Below, piece by piece: positions 3,601 through 60,246 of a stretch of 64,000 nt of DNA (position 1 is the first letter of the stretch; every line of letters starts with the position of its first letter). Made by a program: the position numbers and the translations under genes. The DNA lies in the sequence record MK250028.1; one strand, 5' to 3'. The notes below the pieces were generated by a model. It worked only from the letters and a program-made list of their open reading frames with translations. It was not told where the DNA came from and ran no database searches.

Positions 3601-6600
3601 CATTTGAATTTTTTAAAACAACAACAGATGAATATGAATTGAGAACTGATTTTGGATGCGCAGAAATAACAGGTAATAATCATAAATTTGATTTTTCACA
3701 ATGGGATGATACTATATTATATCCATTTGAAAATGAAAATGGTAATACATATATGTGGGATGATATAGTAACCAGTTAGGAAGGTGCATTTAAAATCGCA
3801 TTAAAATATTTCGTAAGAGATATTGCTATTTCTGGAGGTTATATATTTGATTATTTAGGTAAAGAAGCGATAGACCATAAAAAATGGGATGCAGATGGTG
3901 GATGGAACCATATTGGCGGTGTTCCTGATGTCAGTAAACAATATAAGCGTACATCAGATGATACTACTGTATCATATTATGATCCTACCATTAAAGTACC
4001 AGAAAAATCTAAATGGCAAACTATATTCCAACGTACAATGTAGGATGGTTTTGAATATAATGGAGATATATCATATTCTCGATTAGATTATACATCCGCT
4101 GTAGAATATTACACAATTTGTATGGCATTTGGTTTGGTAGACTCTGTATAGAAAAATTTAAATGTTCGTACTTGGACATTAAATAAAACAAATAGAAAGG
4201 AAACAGATCCAGAAGAAAAAGATTTAACACGTTCTAAATTCTATATATCATTCTACGATATGGATACATGTTTGGGTATCGATAATAACTCTAATGATAC
4301 AACAACTTTCTGTTTTTCTGATTATTGGGAATCAACTGATACTGAATAGAATGGTGTACATATTATTTCATCTATTAATCAATACAGAGATTATTTTTCT
4401 GAAAAATATACAATTACTGATGCTTCTACAGGTATAAAATCTGGTGAAATTGGATACGATATACCATCATCATTCTTATTTGGTGTCGCAAAATATGGTA
4501 CAGAAGTATTTAACACAGATGAACTTTTAAAATTAGATTATCTTGAATATCCAACACCTACATTATTATGGATAAGATATAGAGCAGGAAATACAACAGC
4601 ATATGATAAACCTGGTACAGGATCTTTATAGAATGCACAATATTTCATGGATACTTATTATAAAAAACATATGGAAGGTGTGTCTGAATTAGTATTCAAT
4701 TTAAATTATAAAGTTAAATATCTTGCATATAATATATAGGAAAAATGGGAATTTGATTCAACAAAGAAGAATACCTTTATAGGAACATATACAATAAATA
4801 ATAAAATTAATTATTCTTCAGGTTTCCATAATGATATACAAAAATTTAGAGGTCGTTCTATATATCGTGTATATGATTGGTTAAATTCTAGATTACATAT
4901 ATTAGATGCATATTTTAATTTACAAGATTCACGAGAACTTTTATCTGTATCTGAAATAGAAAAATAGCATCAAACAAATAAAAATACCACTAATACAGAA
5001 CTTGTTCAATTACGTTTATCTGGCAATAACTTGGATGACAGTGTAAAAACTATAGTATCATTATTAAATACTTCTAATGATATTAACATTAAGAGTCAAA
5101 TATTTAAATCTAGCACAACAGATAATCCAAAAATTAATTTTCCATCAAATCCTATAACGTTACAAGTTAAAGCTCAAAATTATTCACCAATAATGTTTGA
5201 TGTCGGTGGTACAATTCAAGGTAAATATTTATTACGTTCATCTGCAAATACGTATTAGATAACATTTAGCGGTTCCGGCAATATAGCATTTGCACTTTAT
5301 GGTTCAAATTAGATAACATATTTAAGTAATGTTACTTGGTATACACCAACATCAATGATAATTGAATCTTCAAATCTTACAAATATTTATGGAAATAATC
5401 CTACATATAATGTAAGTGTTAATAAATTAATGTCTCCTGCATTATAGAAAATTGAATTAATGGGTTATAATTATACGGGTTCATTAGAATTATCAGATAT
5501 ATCTACATATTCAAATTTAAATTTAATTAATATATCAAATACAGGAATAAATTTAAAGGCGACAGATATTAATGTATCAACAATAAATGTATCTGGTGTT
5601 TCTGCTACAAAATGTGAAATTTCAAGATGTAATAAATTATCATCTTTAAAATTAAGTGAATTAAAAGTAACAGATGAATTTTTATTAACTGTTAATTATT
5701 CAAGTAATGTATTATTTAATGAAATTGAAGCAAAACGATTCTCAGTTTCTTGCTCAGTTGTAAATTAGAATAATACAATAGTTATTGATGGCTCACGTGG
5801 TAAATTTTAGACGCTTGAAGAATTAACTATCTCTGGTTTTGCAAAAGTATAGATTTATTCTTGTCCAAAATTGTAGAAAGTTACTATTAGTGAAATTACG
5901 TCTGGAGATGATGCAAAAGATATATATTTGAAAGAACTTGCTATTATTAATTGTTGTACAGATAAATTATGTACAGAATTTAATGTACTTTCATCTACAT
6001 CATCAAGTTAGGATAAAACATTAGATTTATATTCATTTAAGAAATTATCTAGAATATGCTTCTATGGAACATAGAATTTTGAACAAGCAATTTTACCAGA
6101 AACATTAAATTTGCAAGGTAGTGAATTTGGTAATTGTAAATCATTGAAATATGTAGATATTAAAACAAGTATTGGTACAAAAGCAAGTAAAATTACTATC
6201 AATGGATATGATAAATATGTATTATCTTCATCAGCTAAAAGTACTAGAGGATTAACATTTATTACATATACTGCACCAAATGTAGGATGTTTCTATAACT
6301 GTTATGAATTTAAGATGGAACGTACTGTAAATGATAGTTCAGTTGTACCTATTCGCGTAAGTAATTCCGTAAAATCTTTGGAATACTTATTTGGACTTGA
6401 TTCTCATAATAGTAATATAAATTTAGCAAAAATCTCGAATTTTATAGATAATATTTCTATAAGTAATAGTATTACATCTATTAATTATATGTGTATGAAT
6501 CAAGATGGCATTAAATTATCAAAGGAACAATTTGTCGCAGATGGACCAGATAAAGCAACCTTACACTTAGGTACATTTGGTAAATTATCTAGTGGTAATC

Positions 6601-9347
6601 TTGTAGATGCATTTTATATTAATACGATATATATTAATAAATGGATATGGTATGATAAAGATAAAAAACAAATAATCAGTTGTAATAATATTAATAGATT
6701 ATTTGGTCAAGGTTCAAAGAATTTATATATGACAATAGATTGTTTATATCCTATACTGAATAAGATCTAGTATTTAATTGGAATTACTACTTGGCAGACG
6801 ATAATATATCCTATATATTCAGGCTCTTCATAGAAATTTGATGTATATACAATTCTTACAGATGAAAAGAAAACAGAAACTTCATGGAAGGATAAAACAA
6901 CATATACAAAATCTTATACATTTAATGGTACTATTGGTAATTTGATTACGAATCAAGTTGTTCCTGCTCGTGCCATATTTGTTAATGAAACAGGTGCTTC
7001 TCATACAGTAGATTCTCAAGATAATACAGGTGCAATATATCCTACTGCAATGACAAGATTCAGCGGTATTTCATTCTGTGCATCTAATGTACAATGGGAT
7101 TTATATGGATTATTTAGTAAGAAATGGAAATTATAGTATATAGATTTTTTCCAAACATTTGGATTCTCTACAGTAACAGAATATGAAGATTTATTTAATG
7201 CTAAATTTATGCCATCAACATTAATAGATATTAAACATAGTTTAAATACATCATTCAACACATCTGTAGATTATACAAGATTCTTAGATTTTAACACATT
7301 AATTACTAATTATAATAATTCAGTTCCATCAAATGCAATGTTTAATTACGAAAATGGAGATTCTCTTAATTATGCTACAGGATTAACATTTACTAAACAT
7401 ATTAGCAGTGATACATTTAAAGAATGGATGGTATATATATTTAAAGCAAATAATGCTCAAGGTATAACTAACTTATTCAGAAACTGTAATATATTAGTAA
7501 GTCAAGCAGAAGCAAATAATAAATGTGATTTCAGTATAGAAACGATATTTAGCGATTATGGCGAAAATCTCGTAATAAATTAGAAAATACATAATATATA
7601 TTGTTTGTTCTATAATTTACATTGTTATATTAAAGATAAGTATGATATAACTAAAACTAGTTAGTCTGCTGAAGTATAGTATATGACATTTGGTACAGAT
7701 ATGTTTAAATACCTTCCAAATATAACTACTGTTTCATCAGCGTTTACAAATAACTATTGGAATGACCCTATACCATTTAATGTATTTAATAAACGTTATA
7801 AATGTGATGATACATATTATTATCTTGAATTCTTTGAAGGTACTGATATATTAGTAACTGATGAGAATAAAGGTCTTAATGAATATAAAGATAAAAAGAA
7901 AATAAGAAAGAAGATAAAATATGTTTCATATAGTTATAAATAGGTAATGAATTAGGTTAATTCATGTTTCGCTAATATTCATTTTAATCCTGCTTATATT
8001 TCTAACAGATATACTGAAGGTTCTGATATTATTAAAGAAGCAGGTATTAATTATTATCAATTTATAAATGATGATAACACTGTTATAAATGATGATGAGA
8101 AAATATATATTTCTGAAAAAATAAAAGTATTATTACGTTCTACTGGTAATAATAGTGATTATATATACCCATCATATGAATATTATGATACATTAAATTT
8201 GCATGGTGCATTCTATGAAGGTAATTTTGAAAAAGCCGGCACATCTACTGGTGTTACTAATGTAACGTCTTCTATTCAAAAAGCGCCATTAACAAAGTCT
8301 GTATCTGAATATTTAGAATCACTTATAGTTGCGCCAGATTTATTATATGGATGTCAATCATCTGCATCAATATAGGGTATAGTTTCTCAATATGGTGTAT
8401 CGAAAGATATGTTAACTGGTATTTTACCTGCTCATTTCTATAAGCAAATGAAAACATTAGTAGGTGGTACATATGAAGTGTTTACTGGATGTCTTGTAAT
8501 ACCAAATTATGTTGGTACATATGTAAATTATGATTCTAACGGAACATTGAAACTTCGTTATAACATATATACATTTATACCAGAAGAATTTGTAAATTCT
8601 GATATGAATAATTTATAGAATATGTTTAGATTCTATATACATTGGCCAAAACAAGGTCAAACAGAATCAGGCGTGCAAACATATGATTTTTATGTATTAT
8701 CTACAAGCAATTCATTTGGAAGTAATATAACGTCATTAAATAATGCATTCCCTGTTTCATCAGTTGTTTCATATCAATCATATGGAACTATATCAATAAA
8801 TTATCAAACAGCTAACAGATCAATTCACTATAATTTACAATGTACATATTAGACTCAATCTTATGAAGCATCAAAGAAATCAGAGATATTTGGAACACTT
8901 AATTATGATAATTTGAGATATATATCAGTGTTTGATACAGGCCTTAATATGGAAATATATAAGTCATTAAATGTAACTAATTTAATAACAAGTATAAACT
9001 TATTATATGGTTACTATGGATATATATTTAACTCTTCATATGATACAAGAAATATAATATTAACAACAAATTCAGAAAATAAAAAATATTATTGTATTAA
9101 TGTAAGTGCAAATTATCAATGGCAATCTAATTAGTTATCATGTAATATAATATTCCCTATATGTTCTAACACATCAGAAACAACAAGAAGATTATTATAT
9201 TTCTATGATATTCCATAGAATGCTAAATTTAATACTAACATAAGTATGTTTTCAACTTCAGAAAATAGAGAATATTATAAAAATATGTTTGATAGTATGT
9301 TTACATTCAATGATAATGAAAAATATAGTTATGCTACATATGAATAA
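657..9347 (+). CDS. Giant 2896-aa virion-associated protein with CotH-like kinase domain (~3120-4920) and C-terminal leucine-rich repeats
   Basis: Fourteen track ORFs in one frame; I translated the gaps and found only TAG until TAA at 9345-9347. Kinase motifs IQGSST..HGKN, DIVDSAHSNN, LEGFP, YFMGLYNFNLGR, AFGLVDSVQKN, FYDMDTCLGIDN, WLNSRLHILDAYF; LRR-like units such as YSNLNLINIS, CNKLSSLKL, CPKLQKVTI. Confidence 0.85.
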
Positions 9348-42925: not shown

Positions 42926-43418
42926 CTATATTATAGTATTTCTTTCTAAAACATTTTTTTAGTAATGATACAACATGAATATTAGGAAATTCACAAGGAT
43001 TATTAGGATTTGTTTCATTATAAATATCGGGATAACAATCTAATATAAATTTAACAACTCCTTGAGATCTAGATACTCCAGCTGAACAATGAACATAAAT
43101 ATCTTTTCCTAAATTATTCTCTATAAAATTAAATAATTCATTTGCTTGATTATCTGTTAATCCTTTAATTGAATTTGCATATTTAATTTCATCTTCTGTT
43201 ATATCATCTCCATATGCATATAATAAATTATAATCTGTAATATCATAAAAGTCTAAATTAATAACATTATCTCTTGATTTAAATATATGATATTCATCTT
43301 TTGCATTTGGTTCACATATAGATATTATTGCTATATTATCTGGTAATGTATTGTTATCCCATTTATTTTTATTCATTAACGATTTAAATCCGTCAAATCC
43401 TGTACACCAAATTTTCAT
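42918..43418 (-). CDS. Protein-tyrosine/dual-specificity phosphatase-like protein
   Basis: VHCSAGVSRS = HCX5R active-site loop; IISI and FYD upstream. Confidence 0.85.
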   Translation of the reverse strand: MKIWCTGFDGFKSLMNKNKWDNNTLPDNIAIISICEPNAKDEYHIFKSRDNVINLDFYDITDYNLLYAYGDDITEDEIKYANSIKGLTDNQANELFNFIENNLGKDIYVHCSAGVSRSQGVVKFILDCYPDIYNETNPNNPCEFPNIHVVSLLKKCFRKKYYNIDD

Positions 43419-44053
43419 AATTTACTTAATTGAATTTCTAATTCATGTATATGTGATAATTCTTTATCTATCTCATCATTTAAATAATCTATTCTATCTT
43501 GTGATTTTTTAATTAAACGTTTAAGTTCATCTGATAATATATTATTTTCATCAAAATAATTTGAAATAATTTTTTTAATATTATCTATTCCGTTAACAAA
43601 TGTTTTAAATTCATCATCTGTTAATTTAAAAGAAATTTGATTATTTAAATTATAAACATATATTTTTTCTTTTAATGATTTACATTCTTTTAAAAAGAGT
43701 TCTATATTTTCATCTATTATAAAATCTAAATCATAATCAGTAAATTTGACAAAAGTATTAATTTCAAAATTATCATACTTTGGATTAATAAATACGTCGT
43801 TAAATATATAATTTACATAATAGAATAAATCAACTCCATAAATATCATGAAACGAATCTGTATGACATACTATAAAATCTCCTAATTTCATATTAGAAAA
43901 ATATCCATAATCGAAATCAAATATTTTTATTGTTCTATTTAATAAATCAATTGGTATATTATCTTTTAAAATTTTAGGAAAATCATTTTCATCAGGACAT
44001 TCTAATAATTTATGAATATCCTGATATATGTTTTTTAATTTCTCATATTCCAT
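43415..44053 (-). CDS. Hypothetical protein (212 aa)
   Basis: Track ORF; ATGA overlap with the next gene. Confidence 0.75.
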   Translation of the reverse strand: MEYEKLKNIYQDIHKLLECPDENDFPKILKDNIPIDLLNRTIKIFDFDYGYFSNMKLGDFIVCHTDSFHDIYGVDLFYYVNYIFNDVFINPKYDNFEINTFVKFTDYDLDFIIDENIELFLKECKSLKEKIYVYNLNNQISFKLTDDEFKTFVNGIDNIKKIISNYFDENNILSDELKRLIKKSQDRIDYLNDEIDKELSHIHELEIQLSKL

Positions 44054-44055
44054 AT

Positions 44056-44745
44056 TTAAATAAACTTTTTAATATATTTTAATGTATCATGAATATCTTG
44101 AGAAAACTTAAACAATGCTTCCTTTGTTTTAAGATTAATATCTTTATATAGTTGTTCTTTCGTTTCAAACCCTATAGCATCATCTGATTTCATCCATGAT
44201 TTCTGTATAACTGCAGTATGCCTATTACTATCATTAATAGTAATATTATCCCAATTATTACCATATATATTAATTTCTGTATATACAATAGTTACTCTAT
44301 TATTAATAATATTTACATCTTCTAACATAATATAAGTATCATTAATATTATAATCAAAACCACATGGTTCTACACCATATGTTATATCTTTATAAAAATC
44401 ATTATCTACTTTTCGCATAACTTTACCAGTATCTAAATAATTATGCTGAATAAAATCACGTAATTCAATATTATATTGAGATATAAAATTACCGCATGGA
44501 CATTGTTCAGTCAAAAATATTTGCATATTATATGGTAAATATTTAAAATCTTCATTATTAACATTTAAATAACGACGTTTTACTAATTTAAATGTATAAT
44601 CAATATTATTGATATTAATAGTTACTTCTTCCTTTGCACAAAAATCTTGATATGTATGCAACTTATTTAAAAGACGTTTAAATAATGTAGCAACTCTATC
44701 ACAACCTAAATCATTTACTGAAATATCATATACTTCAAAATTCAT
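44056..44745 (-). CDS. Hypothetical protein (229 aa)
   Basis: Track ORF, ends TAA. Confidence 0.75.
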   Translation of the reverse strand: MNFEVYDISVNDLGCDRVATLFKRLLNKLHTYQDFCAKEEVTININNIDYTFKLVKRRYLNVNNEDFKYLPYNMQIFLTEQCPCGNFISQYNIELRDFIQHNYLDTGKVMRKVDNDFYKDITYGVEPCGFDYNINDTYIMLEDVNIINNRVTIVYTEINIYGNNWDNITINDSNRHTAVIQKSWMKSDDAIGFETKEQLYKDINLKTKEALFKFSQDIHDTLKYIKKFI

Positions 44746-44780
44746 AGTTATATTATTTTTTAATTAAACATTCTATTAAT

Positions 44781-44792
44781 ACAAAGATACAT
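44781..44792 (-). promoter_or_regulatory. Bacteroidetes-type promoter TATCTTTG, copy 2
   Basis: ATGTATCTTTGT upstream of ATG 44745. Confidence 0.8.
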
Positions 44793-44814
44793 AAAATTAT
44801 TAAAAATAAAAAAT

Positions 44815-44852
44815 AGTAATTAAGAAAACTAATATTAAATTTCTTAATTACT
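44815..44852 (-). terminator. Putative terminator hairpin
   Basis: AGTAATTAAGAAA/TTTCTTAATTACT. Confidence 0.65.
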
Positions 44853-44863
44853 ATATATTTTAA

Positions 44864-45070
44864 TTACTTTGATGACGAGCTAGATGATGATGGAAATAAT
44901 AATTTAGCAACTGTCATCAAACACAATGCATGAATATATGTAATTGTTGGTAAACCAAATAAATATGGCATAACATAATTCCAACAAATCATAAATATAA
45001 TTGCACCTAAAATAATAAATATAATTGCAACTAAAATAGTTACAATTGATGTCCATATAAAAGTTTTCAT
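44864..45070 (-). CDS. Small two-TM membrane protein (68 aa)
   Basis: Long hydrophobic helix, LFGLPTITYIHAL, second helix, poly-Ser tail. Confidence 0.75.
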   Translation of the reverse strand: MKTFIWTSIVTILVAIIFIILGAIIFMICWNYVMPYLFGLPTITYIHALCLMTVAKLLFPSSSSSSSK

Positions 45071-45075
45071 ATAAT

Positions 45076-45177
45076 TTATTTACTTGTAATTAATGCAAAT
45101 AGAATATTTGATAATACATTAAATCTAAACTTCTTTTTTGCATATCTACCTTTATTTTTTATTTGTTCATACTTCAT
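45076..45177 (-). CDS. Possible 33-aa peptide MKYEQIKNKGRYAKKKFRFNVLSNILFALITSK
   Basis: Fills the operon gap and overlaps the upstream stop; below the track size cut-off. Confidence 0.35.
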   Translation of the reverse strand: MKYEQIKNKGRYAKKKFRFNVLSNILFALITSK

Positions 45178-45391
45178 TATTTCTATTATTATAATAATTA
45201 ATCAAATCAACTTTCATTTCTTTATTAAATTGATTATTTCTTTTTCTATTTCTAATAACTCTATCTTCTGCTATTTCACAATTATAACGTTTCCATTTAT
45301 TTAAAATAGAACGTCTATACTTTGGTTTAATTTTATCTTTATTATCATGCATATAATCATATACAGCTTGTTCTTTAAAATTATTACTCAT
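45167..45391 (-). CDS. Hypothetical basic protein (74 aa)
   Basis: Track ORF, ends TGA. Confidence 0.65.
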   Translation of the reverse strand: MSNNFKEQAVYDYMHDNKDKIKPKYRRSILNKWKRYNCEIAEDRVIRNRKRNNQFNKEMKVDLINYYNNRNNEV

Positions 45392-45433
45392 AGTATATTT
45401 TATAAAGATATTTTATTTTCAAAATAATAAAAA

Positions 45434-45499
45434 ATAAACATCAAAATTGTGGTTCTAAATCTTACTGCTACTTACTAAGACTACAATTTTGATGTTTAT
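45434..45499 (-). terminator. Long terminator hairpin closing candidate ncRNA-1
   Basis: ATAAACATCAAAATTGT/ACAATTTTGATGTTTAT 17-bp stem with a T run on the minus strand. Confidence 0.75.
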
Positions 45500-46243
45500 A
45501 AAAGCAATCATTCATTATCCTGCAGCATCCATATTAGTATAAGTTTCATTGCAATAGAACTTTACAACTATAGTGATAATCCACTTATACATTCTTTTAC
45601 TCTAAAGTCTTTTATATAACTTTATCATACATAATATATGTACTGTCCATCAATAAAAGGTTCTTTATTTCATCATGGTTTTATATCGTATAAACAACCC
45701 TCTGTATATCACTGATTCATTTCTTTACATTTAGAAATCAGAGTCTTTAAGCCTCAACGTTTGGCTGTAACTATTATCCTCAACCATTACCAGATAATGT
45801 CATCTTGTTTTTGTGGTGCATCTCACATACCTCCTTTAATCATAAAACAAGCAAAACTACTAAGACAAATAACGTTTCTTAGAACTTCTACGAATTTACG
45901 CTCATATCAAATCATCATCTGATATAGACACCTAAATTAAGTGAATAAAGTTTACGACTCAATATAAAATTTTATATCTCAACCTTTATCAAAAACGATT
46001 CATTAAATTCTTTTAAGGAACTTATTTCTAATTAAATGAAGGATTCATTTAAAATAGGTTCTCCCGAAAACATGCGGTTTATCCTTACTCATTATAATTA
46101 TAATAAGCGTTGTTTATAGCACTCATTAGAATTCATTATGTATTATCTAACTCTCATTTATAATATTCATAATTTATATGATATTAAAAGCAAAATGTCT
46201 AATATCATATTATAAATTATTTGTCTCGTTAGATATTATCAAA

Positions 46244-46257
46244 ATTTCAAAGAACTC
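46244..46257 (-). promoter_or_regulatory. boxA-like antitermination element GAGTTCTTTGAAAT
   Basis: Exact 14-nt match to 52387-52400; resembles rRNA-leader boxA (GTTCTTTGAAA type). Confidence 0.65.
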
Positions 46258-46280
46258 TTCATTGTTATTTTATTAACAAT

Positions 46281-46292
46281 ACAAAGATACAC
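46281..46292 (-). promoter_or_regulatory. Bacteroidetes-type promoter TATCTTTG, copy 3 (drives ncRNA-1 region)
   Basis: GTGTATCTTTGT; the nearest downstream CDS starts about 890 nt away. Confidence 0.8.
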
Positions 46293-46342
46293 ATTCTTTT
46301 TTAATAAAAAAAATATTCTAAGAAAAAATTAAAAATATTTTT

Positions 46343-47143
46343 TTATCTTACAAAACATGTTGCATATCCATGTTCAACCTTAATAAATAATACTTCACCA
46401 TTTAACCACAATTTATCAAATGGTGTTTTATCACCATTTTCTTGCATATCTTTATGTTCATCAATAGCATATTTCTCAATGTCATCAATACTACCTTTAT
46501 AATAATTCTTTATGTTATCAGATTCAAGATATGCAATTCGCGACTTACATTCGTCAAGAAGTTCTTCAAATACAGGAACAGATTTATTACAAAATCTGTC
46601 ATACTCATTCTGAAAATTAATATTAGATGAACAAATACCATTTGTAATAATACGAGATACATTTTCAAGTTTCTCTAGATTATCAAGGTCTACATAAAAA
46701 TCATCGCATGTAATATCATTATCTTTATACATCACTATAGTATGAATTTTTGCATTCCATAATTCACACCATTTATTTGCTCCATCCTCTACAAGTTGTC
46801 CAAAATCATTATCATGAAAATCAAACATAATCATGAAATTCTTATCAACTGTAATATCATTGGTTTCATATGGATCACCTTTATACTTATGTCCATCATA
46901 AAGGCCTGTAAGATATGAAGAACGGCTTATCCTTAAAATCTCTTTCAAACAAAAATCCTTAATTTTTTTATATTCTTCGTCATTTAGATTATCTGTTCCA
47001 TCAAGTAAATCTAATACTGAGTCATAATATTTTTCTTCATTTTTTACATAGTCATAAGACATATCTACAAATGGCTTGCCGAACATACGAATTTCAGATT
47101 TATTCATATCTTCTTGCATCTTCTTAAGATCTATTTCTTTCAT
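46343..47143 (-). CDS. Hypothetical protein (266 aa)
   Basis: Track ORF, ends TAA. Confidence 0.8.
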   Translation of the reverse strand: MKEIDLKKMQEDMNKSEIRMFGKPFVDMSYDYVKNEEKYYDSVLDLLDGTDNLNDEEYKKIKDFCLKEILRISRSSYLTGLYDGHKYKGDPYETNDITVDKNFMIMFDFHDNDFGQLVEDGANKWCELWNAKIHTIVMYKDNDITCDDFYVDLDNLEKLENVSRIITNGICSSNINFQNEYDRFCNKSVPVFEELLDECKSRIAYLESDNIKNYYKGSIDDIEKYAIDEHKDMQENGDKTPFDKLWLNGEVLFIKVEHGYATCFVR

Positions 47144-47156
47144 ATTTCTTAATTAT

Positions 47157-48092
47157 TTACATTGTTCCATCATTAGGTTGCAAACACATAATTCCATGCT
47201 CTCGCCACATCTTAACCACTTTAGAAGAATCTTCCAATACAAACAATACATTATAATAAGGTTCAATATATTCCTTATATAAATTATATTTACAATCTGG
47301 ACCCTTTGTAAAATTCTTCAAAGGTCTCATTAACACCTTATCAACATTACCAATAAGGTTATTCTTCAACCAATCTTCTGTTGCATGTCTAATATCGTCT
47401 GTATCTTCTCTACCTGTCAATATAATAACATCCACTGATTTATCGGCAATATATGTATTAACAAGTTGGCAAAGTTGCTTACATGGTTTATCATCCCTCA
47501 TGCTATCAGCAGCACCATTACCATAAAATGGCCGACCTTGAAGATTAAAACAAAGTGTAGCATCCATATCTACAAGAATACAATTCTTCTTCGTTTCATC
47601 AAACTTCTTAAAGCTATTATATTGCTTATTATTAAGTTGTGTAGCAATAAAGTTTCTATATCGCCTATAAGTAGATTTGATAACGGATTCACCTATAGGA
47701 TTAGATCTAAATGAATCTCTTCTAATACATTCCTCTACCGATACATCAAAGAAATCCTTAAATTCCAATGTATAATGATACTCATTATGTGTCTCATTAT
47801 ACTTATCAATTCTATCTTGCATTTCTTTCCATCCCTTTGGATTCAGGTTCATATTATCCATAATGATATTCCAACCTTTTTTCATAGGTGATTTAAAAAA
47901 TGCATCTGTCATATCTTTAATAACAGAAAGTTTCTCACGTGATTCTACCCAATACTCACCGAACATGTTTCTAAGAGAATCCCAATTAATTCTAATTCTC
48001 TCAGTTGGTTTTTCCTTTACCCAATGTTCAGCGAATGTAGACTTACCAGACGCTTGAATACCTCTTGTCAATATAATTACCCTTTCTTTCAT
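47157..48092 (-). CDS. pseT: Polynucleotide 5'-kinase / 3'-phosphatase (T4 PseT-like)
   Basis: P-loop GIQASGKST, INWDSLRNM, VEECIRRD, HAD motif DMDAT, ILTGRE, LMRP, FVLED..VVKMWREHGIMCLQ. Confidence 0.92.
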   Translation of the reverse strand: MKERVIILTRGIQASGKSTFAEHWVKEKPTERIRINWDSLRNMFGEYWVESREKLSVIKDMTDAFFKSPMKKGWNIIMDNMNLNPKGWKEMQDRIDKYNETHNEYHYTLEFKDFFDVSVEECIRRDSFRSNPIGESVIKSTYRRYRNFIATQLNNKQYNSFKKFDETKKNCILVDMDATLCFNLQGRPFYGNGAADSMRDDKPCKQLCQLVNTYIADKSVDVIILTGREDTDDIRHATEDWLKNNLIGNVDKVLMRPLKNFTKGPDCKYNLYKEYIEPYYNVLFVLEDSSKVVKMWREHGIMCLQPNDGTM

Positions 48093-48110
48093 TATTACTA
48101 ATTAATATAA

Positions 48111-48647
48111 TTAAAATTCTATTCCAATACCTGCATACCAACTATATCTTGTTGCTGTCACTTGAATATTAAAATGTTTCATATTAAATACAACTGCTCC
48201 ACCATAATCAAAATCTTTAATTTGATCATCAACATTAAATTTATTATGAATACCATTACTATCTGTATGCCAATTATATCCATCTGTTGTACCAGTTGCA
48301 TCATATGCATAACCAACCATAGGAATAACTCGCAACCATTTTGTTATAGGTACCTGATAACCAACATGAAATGTTAACGCTTTATCATCATCCCATGTAT
48401 CTACTCTAACATCACTTCCATGTGAACTTGGCCAACCACCAAAATCTGCATATACACCATAGATCGTAGTAGACATTAATATTTGTTGAAGTCCTAAATC
48501 ATCTGAACATCCAATTCCACCAAAATGAAATCCAAAATTAATTTTTGTATTTGTTTCTTTGAAAATTTCTTTATAATTATTAGCATTTACAGTATTAATA
48601 CTCATAAATGTAAACATCATAATTAGTGTAAAAATAATTTTCTTCAT
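48111..48647 (-). CDS. Outer-membrane beta-barrel protein (178 aa)
   Basis: Sec signal MKKIIFTLIMMFTFMSINTVNA; alternating strands FHVGYQVPI, LRVIPMVGYAY, FDYGGAVVF; C-terminal WYAGIGIEF. Confidence 0.75.
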   Translation of the reverse strand: MKKIIFTLIMMFTFMSINTVNANNYKEIFKETNTKINFGFHFGGIGCSDDLGLQQILMSTTIYGVYADFGGWPSSHGSDVRVDTWDDDKALTFHVGYQVPITKWLRVIPMVGYAYDATGTTDGYNWHTDSNGIHNKFNVDDQIKDFDYGGAVVFNMKHFNIQVTATRYSWYAGIGIEF

Positions 48648-48691
48648 AATTTATATCTTTTAATTGTTTATTATTCTATTTAATTAACAAT

Positions 48692-48703
48692 ACAAAGATA
48701 CAT
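48692..48703 (-). promoter_or_regulatory. Bacteroidetes-type promoter TATCTTTG, copy 4
   Basis: ATGTATCTTTGT upstream of ATG 48647. Confidence 0.8.
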
Positions 48704-51329: not shown

Positions 51330-51361
51330 AGTTATTAGACTTATGCACAATCTAATAACTC
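51330..51361 (-). terminator. Intrinsic terminator closing candidate ncRNA-2
   Basis: GAGTTATTAGA/TCTAATAACTC stem followed by ATTTTTT on the minus strand. Confidence 0.8.
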
Positions 51362-52386
51362 ACAAACACTTTATTCTAAATTTATTATATTTACATCTTA
51401 TTTAAAGATGTCCCTCATGTTGTTATTTGTACGAACATAAGTTTCTGCCTCTTATGATTCACTTTAACGTTTGCCCGTTATATAATGAATGTTCATACTG
51501 AACTTCGTTATGTCCATAAGGACAAATGGCTGAGAACTTGACCAACACCGACTCTCAATGCTGTAACGTTGGAGTTACATGTTCACACAACTCTTATTTC
51601 TAAGAGGTTGAGAGCATACCCACGACTTTTGTAAAAAATCGTAAACTCTTACTTGATAGGTTTCATAGAAATTCATTTCATACCAACTTCCTTGGAAGGA
51701 TTCAATGTGTCCCCACATTTAGCACGATACTACTCTTACTATTCTCATGTCTTTCCTTGCGGTACTCGAATCATGTCTACATATTACAGTAGAATAAGGG
51801 TATTTTAACCACCAAGTGTCGCACACTTTTGCTTATACATAATTATATGTTAAATAAAATAATTTCCAATATTATTATTCTTATTATATATTCTTTAGAC
51901 TTGAAAGACGAGGTGCGACCAATAGCATTTCTTCCTTTTGAGAAGAACCCACTAAATCGCCTTTCTGAAATTTCGTTACACCAATGTAACCATATTTCTA
52001 CTCTTATAACTTACCTATTGTTTTTCAATAGTAATCTTACCATTTCTGAAACAAGTTACCAGCTTGTATAAATTATTTGGTTTATAATTTATATAAGATT
52101 CATTATAACAATTAATATTAGCACTGGGAATTGGTATTCCGATCACTAAATATCCATAAACTTAAACTCCTATTGTATTACTACTCACATCAGTTGTCTA
52201 TCAAACTTCCAATGTATATAAACTTCATCTCAGGAATTATCCCATCAATTTCCCATTTATACAAGCACTTACTAAGTTTGGTTTTCTGTAGAATGCTCAT
52301 TATTCATAAACATCGATAAACATGTCTACTGTTTACCTTTATCACATCACTGCTTTATCCTTACCCCACCGAAACCATGGGTTTAT

Positions 52387-52400
52387 ATTTCAAAGAACTC
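52387..52400 (-). promoter_or_regulatory. boxA-like antitermination element GAGTTCTTTGAAAT
   Basis: Exact copy of 46244-46257, about 30 nt downstream of the predicted start site. Confidence 0.65.
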
Positions 52401-53778: not shown

Positions 53779-53802
53779 TTTTCTATATTATTTAAAATAA
53801 AA

Positions 53803-54009
53803 TTAAACTTTTAAATTAACTAAATCTTTATACTTTATTTCTTTATACTTTGTTTTATTAATAGATATAAAAATAGGCTTATCAGTATAACTTTTATAAT
53901 AATTTAACGATTCGTCTTTACTAATAAACCACTTTGTTTCTTTATCTAAAATTTTTCCAGATAAACTTCTTCCTAATCCTATCCGAATAATAATATTATT
54001 TTTCAACAT
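53803..54009 (-). CDS. Hypothetical protein (68 aa)
   Basis: Track ORF, ends TAA. Confidence 0.55.
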   Translation of the reverse strand: MLKNNIIIRIGLGRSLSGKILDKETKWFISKDESLNYYKSYTDKPIFISINKTKYKEIKYKDLVNLKV

Positions 54010-54051
54010 AATTAAAAATAATTTTTCAAAAAGAAATTTATAAATTAATTA

Positions 54052-54485
54052 NNNNNNNNNNNNNNNNNNNNNNNNNNNNNNNNNNNNNNNNNNNNNNNNN
54101 NNNNNNNNNNNNNNNNNNNNNNNNNNNNNNNNNNNNNNNNNNNNNNNNNNNNNNNNNNNNNNNNNNNNNNNNNNNNNNNNNNNNNNNNNNNNNNNNNNNN
54201 NNNNNNNNNNNNNNNNNNNNNNNNNNNNNNNNNNNNNNNNNNNNNNNNNNNNNNNNNNNNNNNNNNNNNNNNNNNNNNNNNNNNNNNNNNNNNNNNNNNN
54301 NNNNNNNNNNNNNNNNNNNNNNNNNNNNNNNNNNNNNNNNNNNNNNNNNNNNNNNNNNNNNNNNNNNNNNNNNNNNNNNNNNNNNNNNNNNNNNNNNNNN
54401 NNNNNNNNNNNNNNNNNNNNNNNNNNNNNNNNNNNNNNNNNNNNNNNNNNNNNNNNNNNNNNNNNNNNNNNNNNNNNNNNNNNNN
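54052..54485. other. Assembly gap (434 N)
   Basis: Run of N. Confidence 1.
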
Positions 54486-54503
54486 TTTATAATTTGTTGT
54501 AAA

Positions 54504-60234: not shown

Positions 60235-60246
60235 ACAAAGATACAT
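60235..60246 (-). promoter_or_regulatory. Bacteroidetes-type promoter TATCTTTG, copy 6
   Basis: ATGTATCTTTGT upstream of ATG 60199. Confidence 0.8.

Follow-up and report, generated by a model that had tools for sequence, protein, structure and literature searches.

The question raised by this locus is whether a long stretch without a usable reading frame, lying in a gene-dense region of a phage genome, is a gene for a structured RNA, and if so, how that RNA is made and to which family it belongs. In a preliminary description, made from the sequence alone, positions 45434-46292 were proposed to hold a candidate structured non-coding RNA of ~840 nt with its own promoter, boxA and terminator, for which GOLLD and ROOL were mentioned as large phage-associated RNAs of comparable size but no family was assigned. 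We analyzed the stretch in its context, that is, the 64,000 nucleotides from record MK250028.1 (hereafter designated the window; 25% G+C). The window belongs to a Lak-B megaphage of Prevotella, the gap region being 100% identical to Prevotella phage Lak-B1 (MK250020.1, 479375-480325), 99.7-100% identical to the other B-Lak genomes, and ~78% identical to Lak-A1, A2 and C1. Lak phages, genomes of which have been published (Devoto 2019; Crisci 2021, PMC8346664; Cook 2024, PMC11165621), are ~540-kb megaphages that read TAG as glutamine (PMC6784885). The neighboring genes, all on the minus strand, encode a 178-aa protein, a polynucleotide kinase/phosphatase (PNK; 47157-48092, phrog_505, E=1e-58), a 266-aa protein of unknown function (46343-47143), and then, beyond the gap, a basic 74-aa protein (45167-45391), small proteins and, further on, a head maturation protease. 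The 266-aa protein has no PHROG family, and its AlphaFold model, although good (pLDDT 87), matched no PDB fold below E=1, giving no functional lead.

The observation proved to be real. The gap at 45392-46342 (951 nt) contains no ORF of 60 aa or more on either strand under code 11, code 4 or TAG=Q, whereas TAA=Q, which nothing supports, opens only low-complexity frames; under TAG=Q, the code used by Lak phages, it is the largest ORF-free gap in the window. The coordinates proposed earlier fit the unit that we infer, from about 46277 to 45424 on the minus strand, which has the following parts.

46303-46315, minus strand: T-rich upstream promoter element (tattttttttatt), about 13 nt before the -7 box.
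46282-46289, minus strand: -7 promoter box TATCTTTG, with the transcription start inferred at about 46277-46272.
46244-46257, minus strand: boxA-like leader, a 14-nt motif with the core GTTCTTTGAAA at 46255-46245.
46146-46243, minus strand: variable 5' region, with large indels between the Lak B, A and A' lineages.
45990-46145, minus strand: conserved 5' core domain, closed by helix 46141-46128 / 46011-46001 and containing hairpin 46108-46087, helix 46087-46082 / 46019-46014 and hairpin 46050-46034.
45944-45990, minus strand: long-range helix GAUAAAG/CUUUAUU (45990-45984 / 45950-45944) enclosing a variable hairpin, the insertion site for 20-130 nt in other lineages.
45532-45906, minus strand: conserved 3' core of about six stem-loop or multibranch domains with long invariant unpaired blocks, comprising hairpins 45890-45852 and 45851-45804 (the latter with an AAAGGAGG-containing inner hairpin), a multibranch domain 45797-45670, a variable-tip hairpin 45667-45603, and hairpin 45590-45537 with a 14-nt invariant unpaired block.
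45520-45525, minus strand: invariant palindrome CUGCAG in an otherwise variable linker.
45424-45499, minus strand: intrinsic terminator, an extended hairpin at 45499-45434 with an invariant apical loop (GUAAGUAGCAG), followed by a U-tract at 45433-45424.

To examine whether the stretch is conserved, homologues were collected through the flanking 266-aa protein, by DNA patterns in IMG/VR and metagenomes, and from GenBank Lak genomes (labels beginning with L below denote individual retrieved sequences). Short-pattern scans of IMG/VR with a 14-mer and a 16-mer returned mostly chance hits. Thirteen syntenic homologues from Lak clades were obtained, and in all Lak lineages sampled the RNA lies between the 266-aa gene, which follows the PNK gene, and the 74-aa gene. 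The two core blocks keep 86-96% nucleotide identity (90-96% in the 5' core and 86-93% in the 3' core), compared with 80-90% for the PNK gene and 63-82% for the 266-aa gene in the same genome pairs. The 266-aa protein falls to 52-55% (L138, L146) and 36-38% (A-type) amino acid identity, while the RNA stays at 91-92% and 78% overall. Variation is concentrated in a few places with large indels, namely the 5' region, where the A' sequences (L159, L160, L162) carry about 100 extra nt, the insertion site, where L134, L135 and L145 carry 80-110-nt inserts, and the hairpin tips. An initial BLAST search, which gave 15-16 places per Lak genome and suggested a repeat family, was found to detect only the shared promoter motif described below; a covariance model of the 5' core (R1) finds one copy per Lak genome at 172-185 bits. 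Among wider relatives, a 168-kb phage group (L140-L143), whose full contigs were not searched, encodes a 37%-identical homologue of the 266-aa protein but has only a 200-nt gap there, with the promoter motif and no RNA.

A decayed protein gene had been named beforehand as a finding that would overturn the RNA reading, and it was excluded. The cores differ by 1-, 2-, 4- and 5-nt indels, none a multiple of three (5-6 of 5-6 indels in the 3' core), five homologues have no sense ORF of 30 aa or more, and conservation is above that of the flanking PNK and 266-aa genes. No open frame conserved among the homologues was found.

Covariation among related phages had likewise been set out in advance as a test of the structure. 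RNAalifold on 13 sequences gave 189 consensus pairs, of which 26 have changes on both sides, with 99.2% of cells canonical. Sliding the 3' partner by 1-3 columns left 1-5 such pairs, and 0 of 500 column shuffles reached the observed values; of 27 pairs in which both columns vary, 24 stay canonical in every sequence, against 0-3 in the slid controls. The phylogenetic depth is small, however, with 13 sequences (10 distinct in the 5' core) in essentially two deep clades plus intermediates, so that many compensatory changes are single events, and the tested structure was derived from the same alignment, to which R-scape was not applied. An independent route, in which the 5' core was realigned with model R1 and its pairs were counted, gave 46 pairs with 99.8% of cells paired and 7 pairs with changes on both sides, against 0-1 in slid controls and with 0 of 500 shuffles matching. 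A scan for further helices revealed UAAGGA/UCCUUA (46087-46082 / 46019-46014), with two independent compensations, in the A-type sequences and in L138. The single-sequence folding z-score is modest (-2.5) and that of the opposite strand is -4.6, and G+C is not raised above the genome average. Long-range pairs with covariation (45990/45944, with GC, GU and AU at the closing pair, and 45784/45678) show a multi-domain fold rather than a string of local hairpins.

The stems named in the preliminary description were all found, with some corrections. CTAAGA/TCTTAG (45882-45877 / 45865-45860), CTTGTTTT/AAAACAAG (45851-45844 / 45811-45804) and GTATAAGT/ACTTATAC (45590-45583 / 45544-45537) are in the RNAalifold consensus, each with compensatory changes, which in the 3' core occur at 45882/45860, 45851/45804, 45784/45678 and 45585/45542 (three pair types) and others. 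GTATAAGT/ACTTATAC encloses one hairpin plus an invariant unpaired block, not two hairpins as had been proposed. TATCAG/TTTGATA (about 45925-45906) is a hairpin in B-type sequences, whereas in A-type sequences a different hairpin (TTAAGA/TCTTAA) sits at the same place. The terminal stem, described earlier as 17 bp, pairs about 24 bases with one internal loop. Two pairings were discarded: global RNAalifold pairs the boxA leader with 46012-45998, but that segment forms a covarying local helix with 46141-46128, and pairing of the 5' end with the CUGCAG region is probably spurious because its 5' arm (46284-46276) lies mostly upstream of the inferred start site. As the 5' core is closed by a covarying local helix, the leader is probably unpaired and free to be bound.

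The RNA is assigned to the minus strand by several features. Of the paired cells, 14% are G-U, which the plus strand could not form; the consensus energy is -111 kcal/mol, against -79 kcal/mol on the complement; the promoter, boxA and U-tract are all oriented for the minus strand; and the GC skew matches the minus-strand genes around it.

The lack of a transcript had also been named as an outcome that would refute the proposal; a transcript was found. Public gut metatranscriptomes contain parts of the stretch, and when four runs from two studies were compared with 43400-48700, contigs of 333-770 nt at k-mer depths of 5.3, 22.8, 148.8 and 331.1 covered only 45520-46209, with unaligned ends reaching about 45433 and 46222. 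The flanking genes had no contigs or contigs at depth 2-10, and depth dropped about 100-fold beyond the terminator, from 331 to 2-3; DNA carry-over would cover the flanks as well. These assembled contigs come from relatives of this phage, as they carry A-type letters and a replaced variable hairpin (within 45944-45990), and they give no strand, no exact ends and only a rough level. The original Lak paper mentioned "large, highly expressed intergenic regions" without analyzing them, papers bearing on this point give no sequence family or structure, and our literature search found no paper that describes this RNA.

We next examined how the RNA is made. A ~50-nt motif at 46317-46265 (minus strand), consisting of a T-rich block, ~11 nt and then atgTATCTTTGTA, recurs upstream of five minus-strand CDSs, at 60243, 57744, 48700, 44789 and 40070, and only here is it not followed by a start codon conserved among homologues. 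The promoter is of a class shared with neighboring genes. The -7 box TATCTTTG, which fits the Bacteroidota consensus TAnnTTTG, is invariant in all 13 homologues and identical in six promoters of the window; at -33, however, there is no clear TTTG but the T-rich block shared by the six phage promoters, which leaves assignment to the Bacteroidota sigma-A class undecided. A consensus promoter and terminator scan, which targets sigma-70 promoters and is limited in loop size and G-C content, missed both elements. The terminator hairpin folds at -21.2 kcal/mol (z = -6.3, 0 of 200 shuffles as good) and is followed by U6 on the minus strand (UUUUUUAUUAU). Its stem covaries, with compensatory changes in 11 pairs, and in L134 the lower stem has a wholly different sequence, while the apical loop is invariant.

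The boxA-like core GTTCTTTGAAA, 26 nt after the -7 box, occurs twice in the window where 0.07 copies are expected, and the 14-nt motif is conserved in all homologues while its flanks vary. The identical 11-mer is present in 16S rRNA leaders of the host's phylum. In a Bacteroides sp. genome it follows a tTATCTTTG box by 21 nt and precedes the 16S 5' end by 99 nt, and in Chitinophaga it lies 75-88 nt before 16S; the leader of the host, Prevotella, was not examined. These were targeted look-ups in three genomes, whereas a 14-mer scan of species genomes returned at least 120 matches, mostly by chance, and only 1 of 120 lay before a 16S gene. In the 541-kb Lak-A2 genome, the motif occurs four times, all on the transcribed strand and always at non-coding units, that is, at this RNA, at a GOLLD-like RNA, and twice inside a 13-tRNA island, against 0-1 for a reversed-pattern control. 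We conclude that the motif is a boxA and infer that the phage uses rrn-type, NusB/NusE-dependent antitermination to make long untranslated RNAs.

The second copy in the window heads this GOLLD-like RNA, which had escaped the preliminary description. It is a ~1.06-kb unit on the minus strand, from about 52400 to 51335, 5.5 kb upstream, with the same 14-nt leader and a terminal hairpin plus T-run. It matches the GOLLD model (RF02032) end to end (51605-51965, 62.4 bits, E=1.8e-15), which is below Rfam's gathering score of 150, but the signature loops and the pseudoknot are kept. It is 90% identical in Lak-A/C and is found in many RNA-seq runs.

A scan against Rfam, the first test that had been suggested for the RNA itself, gave no match. 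None of the 4227 covariance models of Rfam 15 reached the gathering score in the whole window, and a permissive scan of 45200-46500 at E<=10 gave only 5 chance-level hits (E 0.7-6, snoRNA/miRNA models). It is therefore not GOLLD, ROOL, OLE, HEARO, RNase P, tmRNA or an intron, and the earlier statement that no family could be assigned was correct, GOLLD and ROOL being fair analogies but not homologues. ARAGORN found no tRNA or tmRNA in the window or in seven homologous loci. The insert in L135 contains GGTTCGAGTCC, which looks like a T-arm, but neither ARAGORN nor the Rfam tRNA model supports it at E<=1, and this candidate was dropped.

Compared with known systems, GOLLD is likewise large (~800 nt), phage-encoded and very abundant during infection, with a variable 5' part, a conserved 3' part and an unknown function (PMC12286853); the present RNA has different helices, and no tRNA genes lie within the window, whereas GOLLD is often beside tRNA islands. 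Multimer formation was not assayed. ROOL is a large, ornate RNA of phages and prophages of gut and rumen bacteria that is as abundant as rRNA in one strain, has no known protein partner and forms an RNA-only nanocage (PMC12286853), as does GOLLD; the present RNA is restricted to Lak megaphages as far as sampled, with no evidence for pseudoknots or assembly. OLE RNA is a ~600-nt multi-domain bacterial RNA that also has long invariant unpaired blocks, but it is chromosomal in extremophilic Firmicutes and works with the Oap proteins at the membrane, and there is no homology. The leader resembles the boxA of rrn operons, acting in NusB-NusE antitermination (as also lambda nut boxA and boxA upstream of CRISPR arrays), in its promoter-proximal position after the same kind of -7 box and in heading long untranslated transcripts, although here it belongs to a phage gene for a non-ribosomal RNA; boxB and boxC were not looked for.

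Collectively, we conclude with high confidence that this is a discrete minus-strand gene for a large (~850 nt), abundant, highly structured non-coding RNA, the founding member of a family so far seen only in Lak megaphages of Prevotella, and the earlier interpretation is supported, each of the named elements having been found and most having gained independent support. In this view, transcription starts at the promoter with the Bacteroidota-type -7 box, and the boxA element, about 20-30 nt into the transcript, would recruit the host NusB/NusE(S10) machinery, so that RNA polymerase could cross 0.8 kb of untranslated RNA without Rho-dependent termination, as in rRNA operons, and stop at the strong intrinsic terminator, the product accumulating far above neighboring mRNAs. 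The absence of coding capacity, the conservation, the covarying structure, the presence in RNA libraries, the single copy per genome and the motif identity with rrn leaders were shown, whereas the start site, the recruitment of Nus factors (neither their binding nor resistance to Rho was measured) and the function are inferences. Nothing here bears directly on what the mature RNA does. Recognition or tertiary or quaternary contacts are suggested by the long invariant unpaired blocks (the 14-nt block in hairpin 45590-45537 and the AAAGGAGG in a hairpin), by the invariant CUGCAG palindrome, whose role is inferred only, and terminator loop, and by a possible 7-bp pairing between two invariant blocks (AGUGAUA near 45713-45707 and UAUCACU near 45578-45572), which was noted by eye and not tested. 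Our best guess, with low confidence, is that it acts like GOLLD and ROOL as an RNA scaffold or self-assembling particle made in large amounts during infection; a GOLLD-like RNA is its neighbor and shares its leader.

Of the alternatives, the one that survives best, though unlikely, is a very long cis-acting leader or attenuator of the 74-aa gene (45391-45167), sensing a signal and controlling read-through of the terminator. This gene follows the terminator by only ~40 nt, is always syntenic and well conserved (85-97% aa identity), and the apical loop of the terminator is invariant, as if it were recognized by something. However, contig depth falls sharply across the terminator, a -7-like box (TATCTTTA) lies between the terminator and the ATG, 0.8 kb is far longer than any known riboswitch leader, and the GOLLD-like RNA with the same leader is a free-standing RNA. 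It is also improbable that the RNA is a highly diverged GOLLD or ROOL, as the similar size, phage origin and abundance and the nearby GOLLD-like RNA might suggest, since no Rfam hit appears even under permissive filters while the neighbor scores 62 bits against GOLLD under the same settings, and a self-search of the window found no sequence similarity between the two RNAs beyond the leader. Still less likely is an mRNA for a tiny peptide, with a 13-codon ORF starting at the AUG about 7 nt after AAAGGAGG (about 45820-45779) and the rest as UTR. The Shine-Dalgarno-like AAAGGAGG and the frame are present in all homologues, but by a manual count on the alignment about 6 substitutions in the frame are non-synonymous and about 4-5 synonymous, one of them (G to A at codon 13) being explained by the covarying pair 45784/45678; the AAAGGAGG lies in a hairpin whose U-to-C change keeps pairing, Bacteroidota rarely use Shine-Dalgarno pairing, and a peptide would not explain 700 nt of conserved, covarying RNA. 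A decayed or mis-called gene is very improbable on the grounds given above, although antisense ORFs of 53-102 aa, differing in length between lineages, exist in some homologues and Lak phages do recode TAG (PMC6784885). A DNA-level element (replication origin, packaging site or recombination hotspot) with incidental transcripts, suggested by the AT-rich, hairpin-containing, intergenic sequence, is equally improbable given the G-U pairs, the dedicated promoter, boxA and terminator, the RNA depth, the absence of iterons or tandem repeats in the self-comparison and of a skew switch at this locus.

A bolder possibility, which is not excluded but which we consider doubtful, is that Lak megaphages carry a set of rRNA-like "super-expressed" non-coding genes, namely this RNA, the GOLLD-like RNA and the tRNA island, all driven by a copied host rrn control module (the -7 box plus boxA). 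The new RNA would then be a third kind of self-assembling ornate phage RNA, beside GOLLD and ROOL, and might act together with the GOLLD-like RNA, for example as a cage or scaffold around ribosomes or tRNAs while the phage switches the cell to its TAG-recoded translation.

Large structured RNAs without protein partners are rare, GOLLD, ROOL, OLE and raiA being the known ones, and their functions are a long-standing open question. The present analysis puts a sequence, a structure and boundaries on the highly expressed intergenic regions of Lak phages, making them accessible to cryo-EM, SHAPE and pull-down experiments without culture of the phage. It adds a new family, in the largest phages of the human and animal gut, that is as conserved as the best-conserved neighboring genes and much more abundant than their mRNAs, together with a direct neighbor relationship with a GOLLD-like RNA and a shared, testable production mechanism based on a host-type rrn boxA, which would be phage capture of the rRNA antitermination system for non-ribosomal RNAs.

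A second large non-coding unit of ~1.06 kb was found on the minus strand, and the features of the window concerned here are as follows.
51335-52400, minus strand: the second large non-coding unit, with the same 14-nt boxA leader (52388-52398) and a terminal hairpin plus T-run.
51605-51965, minus strand: the part of this unit that matches Rfam GOLLD end to end.
46343-47143, minus strand: the 266-aa protein upstream of the new RNA.
45167-45391, minus strand: a basic 74-aa protein directly after the terminator of the new RNA.
53779-54503: a gap containing 434 N.

The match of the second unit to the GOLLD model scored 62.4 bits (E=1.8e-15), which is below the gathering score of 150. The unit is 90% identical in Lak-A/C and is present in many RNA-seq runs. 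No report of a GOLLD-like RNA in Lak megaphages was found in the papers searched. In the new RNA itself, lineage-specific insertions of 80–110 nt sit inside one helix, as seen in the homologous loci L135 (2800-2900) and, at the same site, L134 and L145 (window equivalent, 45984-45950). The L135 insert contains a T-arm-like GGTTCGAGTCC and a D-arm-like stem, although no tRNA is called there; this arrangement recalls the tRNAs sometimes found in the GOLLD linker (PMC12286853).

A phage promoter class, consisting of a T-rich block, ~11 nt, and then atgTATCTTTGTA, is shared by six sites on the minus strand of the window, at 60243, 57744, 48700, 46289, 44789, and 40070, and is placed 33–53 nt before the start codons. 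The same motif follows the homologue of the 266-aa gene in a distant 168-kb phage group (loci L140-L143, at 3761-3821). The 266-aa protein evolves very fast, at 36–85% identity across Lak clades, and gives a confident, mostly helical AlphaFold model (pLDDT 87), but has neither a match to a PDB fold nor an assigned family. The gap at 53779-54503, in which the 434 N are either masked or an assembly gap, was left untouched. The 74-aa protein, which is always syntenic with the RNA, is 85–97% identical across Lak clades. It has no PHROG family and is a candidate RNA-binding partner, for which binding was not assayed.

The boxA 11-mer was also located in one Bacteroides sp. MAG (G005), where it lies ~87 nt from the end of eight contigs (C5, C10, C11, C16, C17, C18, C33, and C40; positions 84-98 from the contig ends), in two sequence families. 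This distribution is as expected if the assembly breaks at repeated rRNA (or other RNA) operons just after their leaders. In Lak-A2, the only two other copies of the 11-mer (at 3877-3887 and 8589-8599, minus strand, in L298, that is, MK250019.1 409500-418400) lie in a 13-tRNA island. A search of this region against Rfam returned nothing except the tRNAs. The stretches after the two copies (L298 3056-3874 and about 6300-8590) hold only “ORFs” with 9–14 in-frame TAGs, so they may be further large non-coding RNAs.
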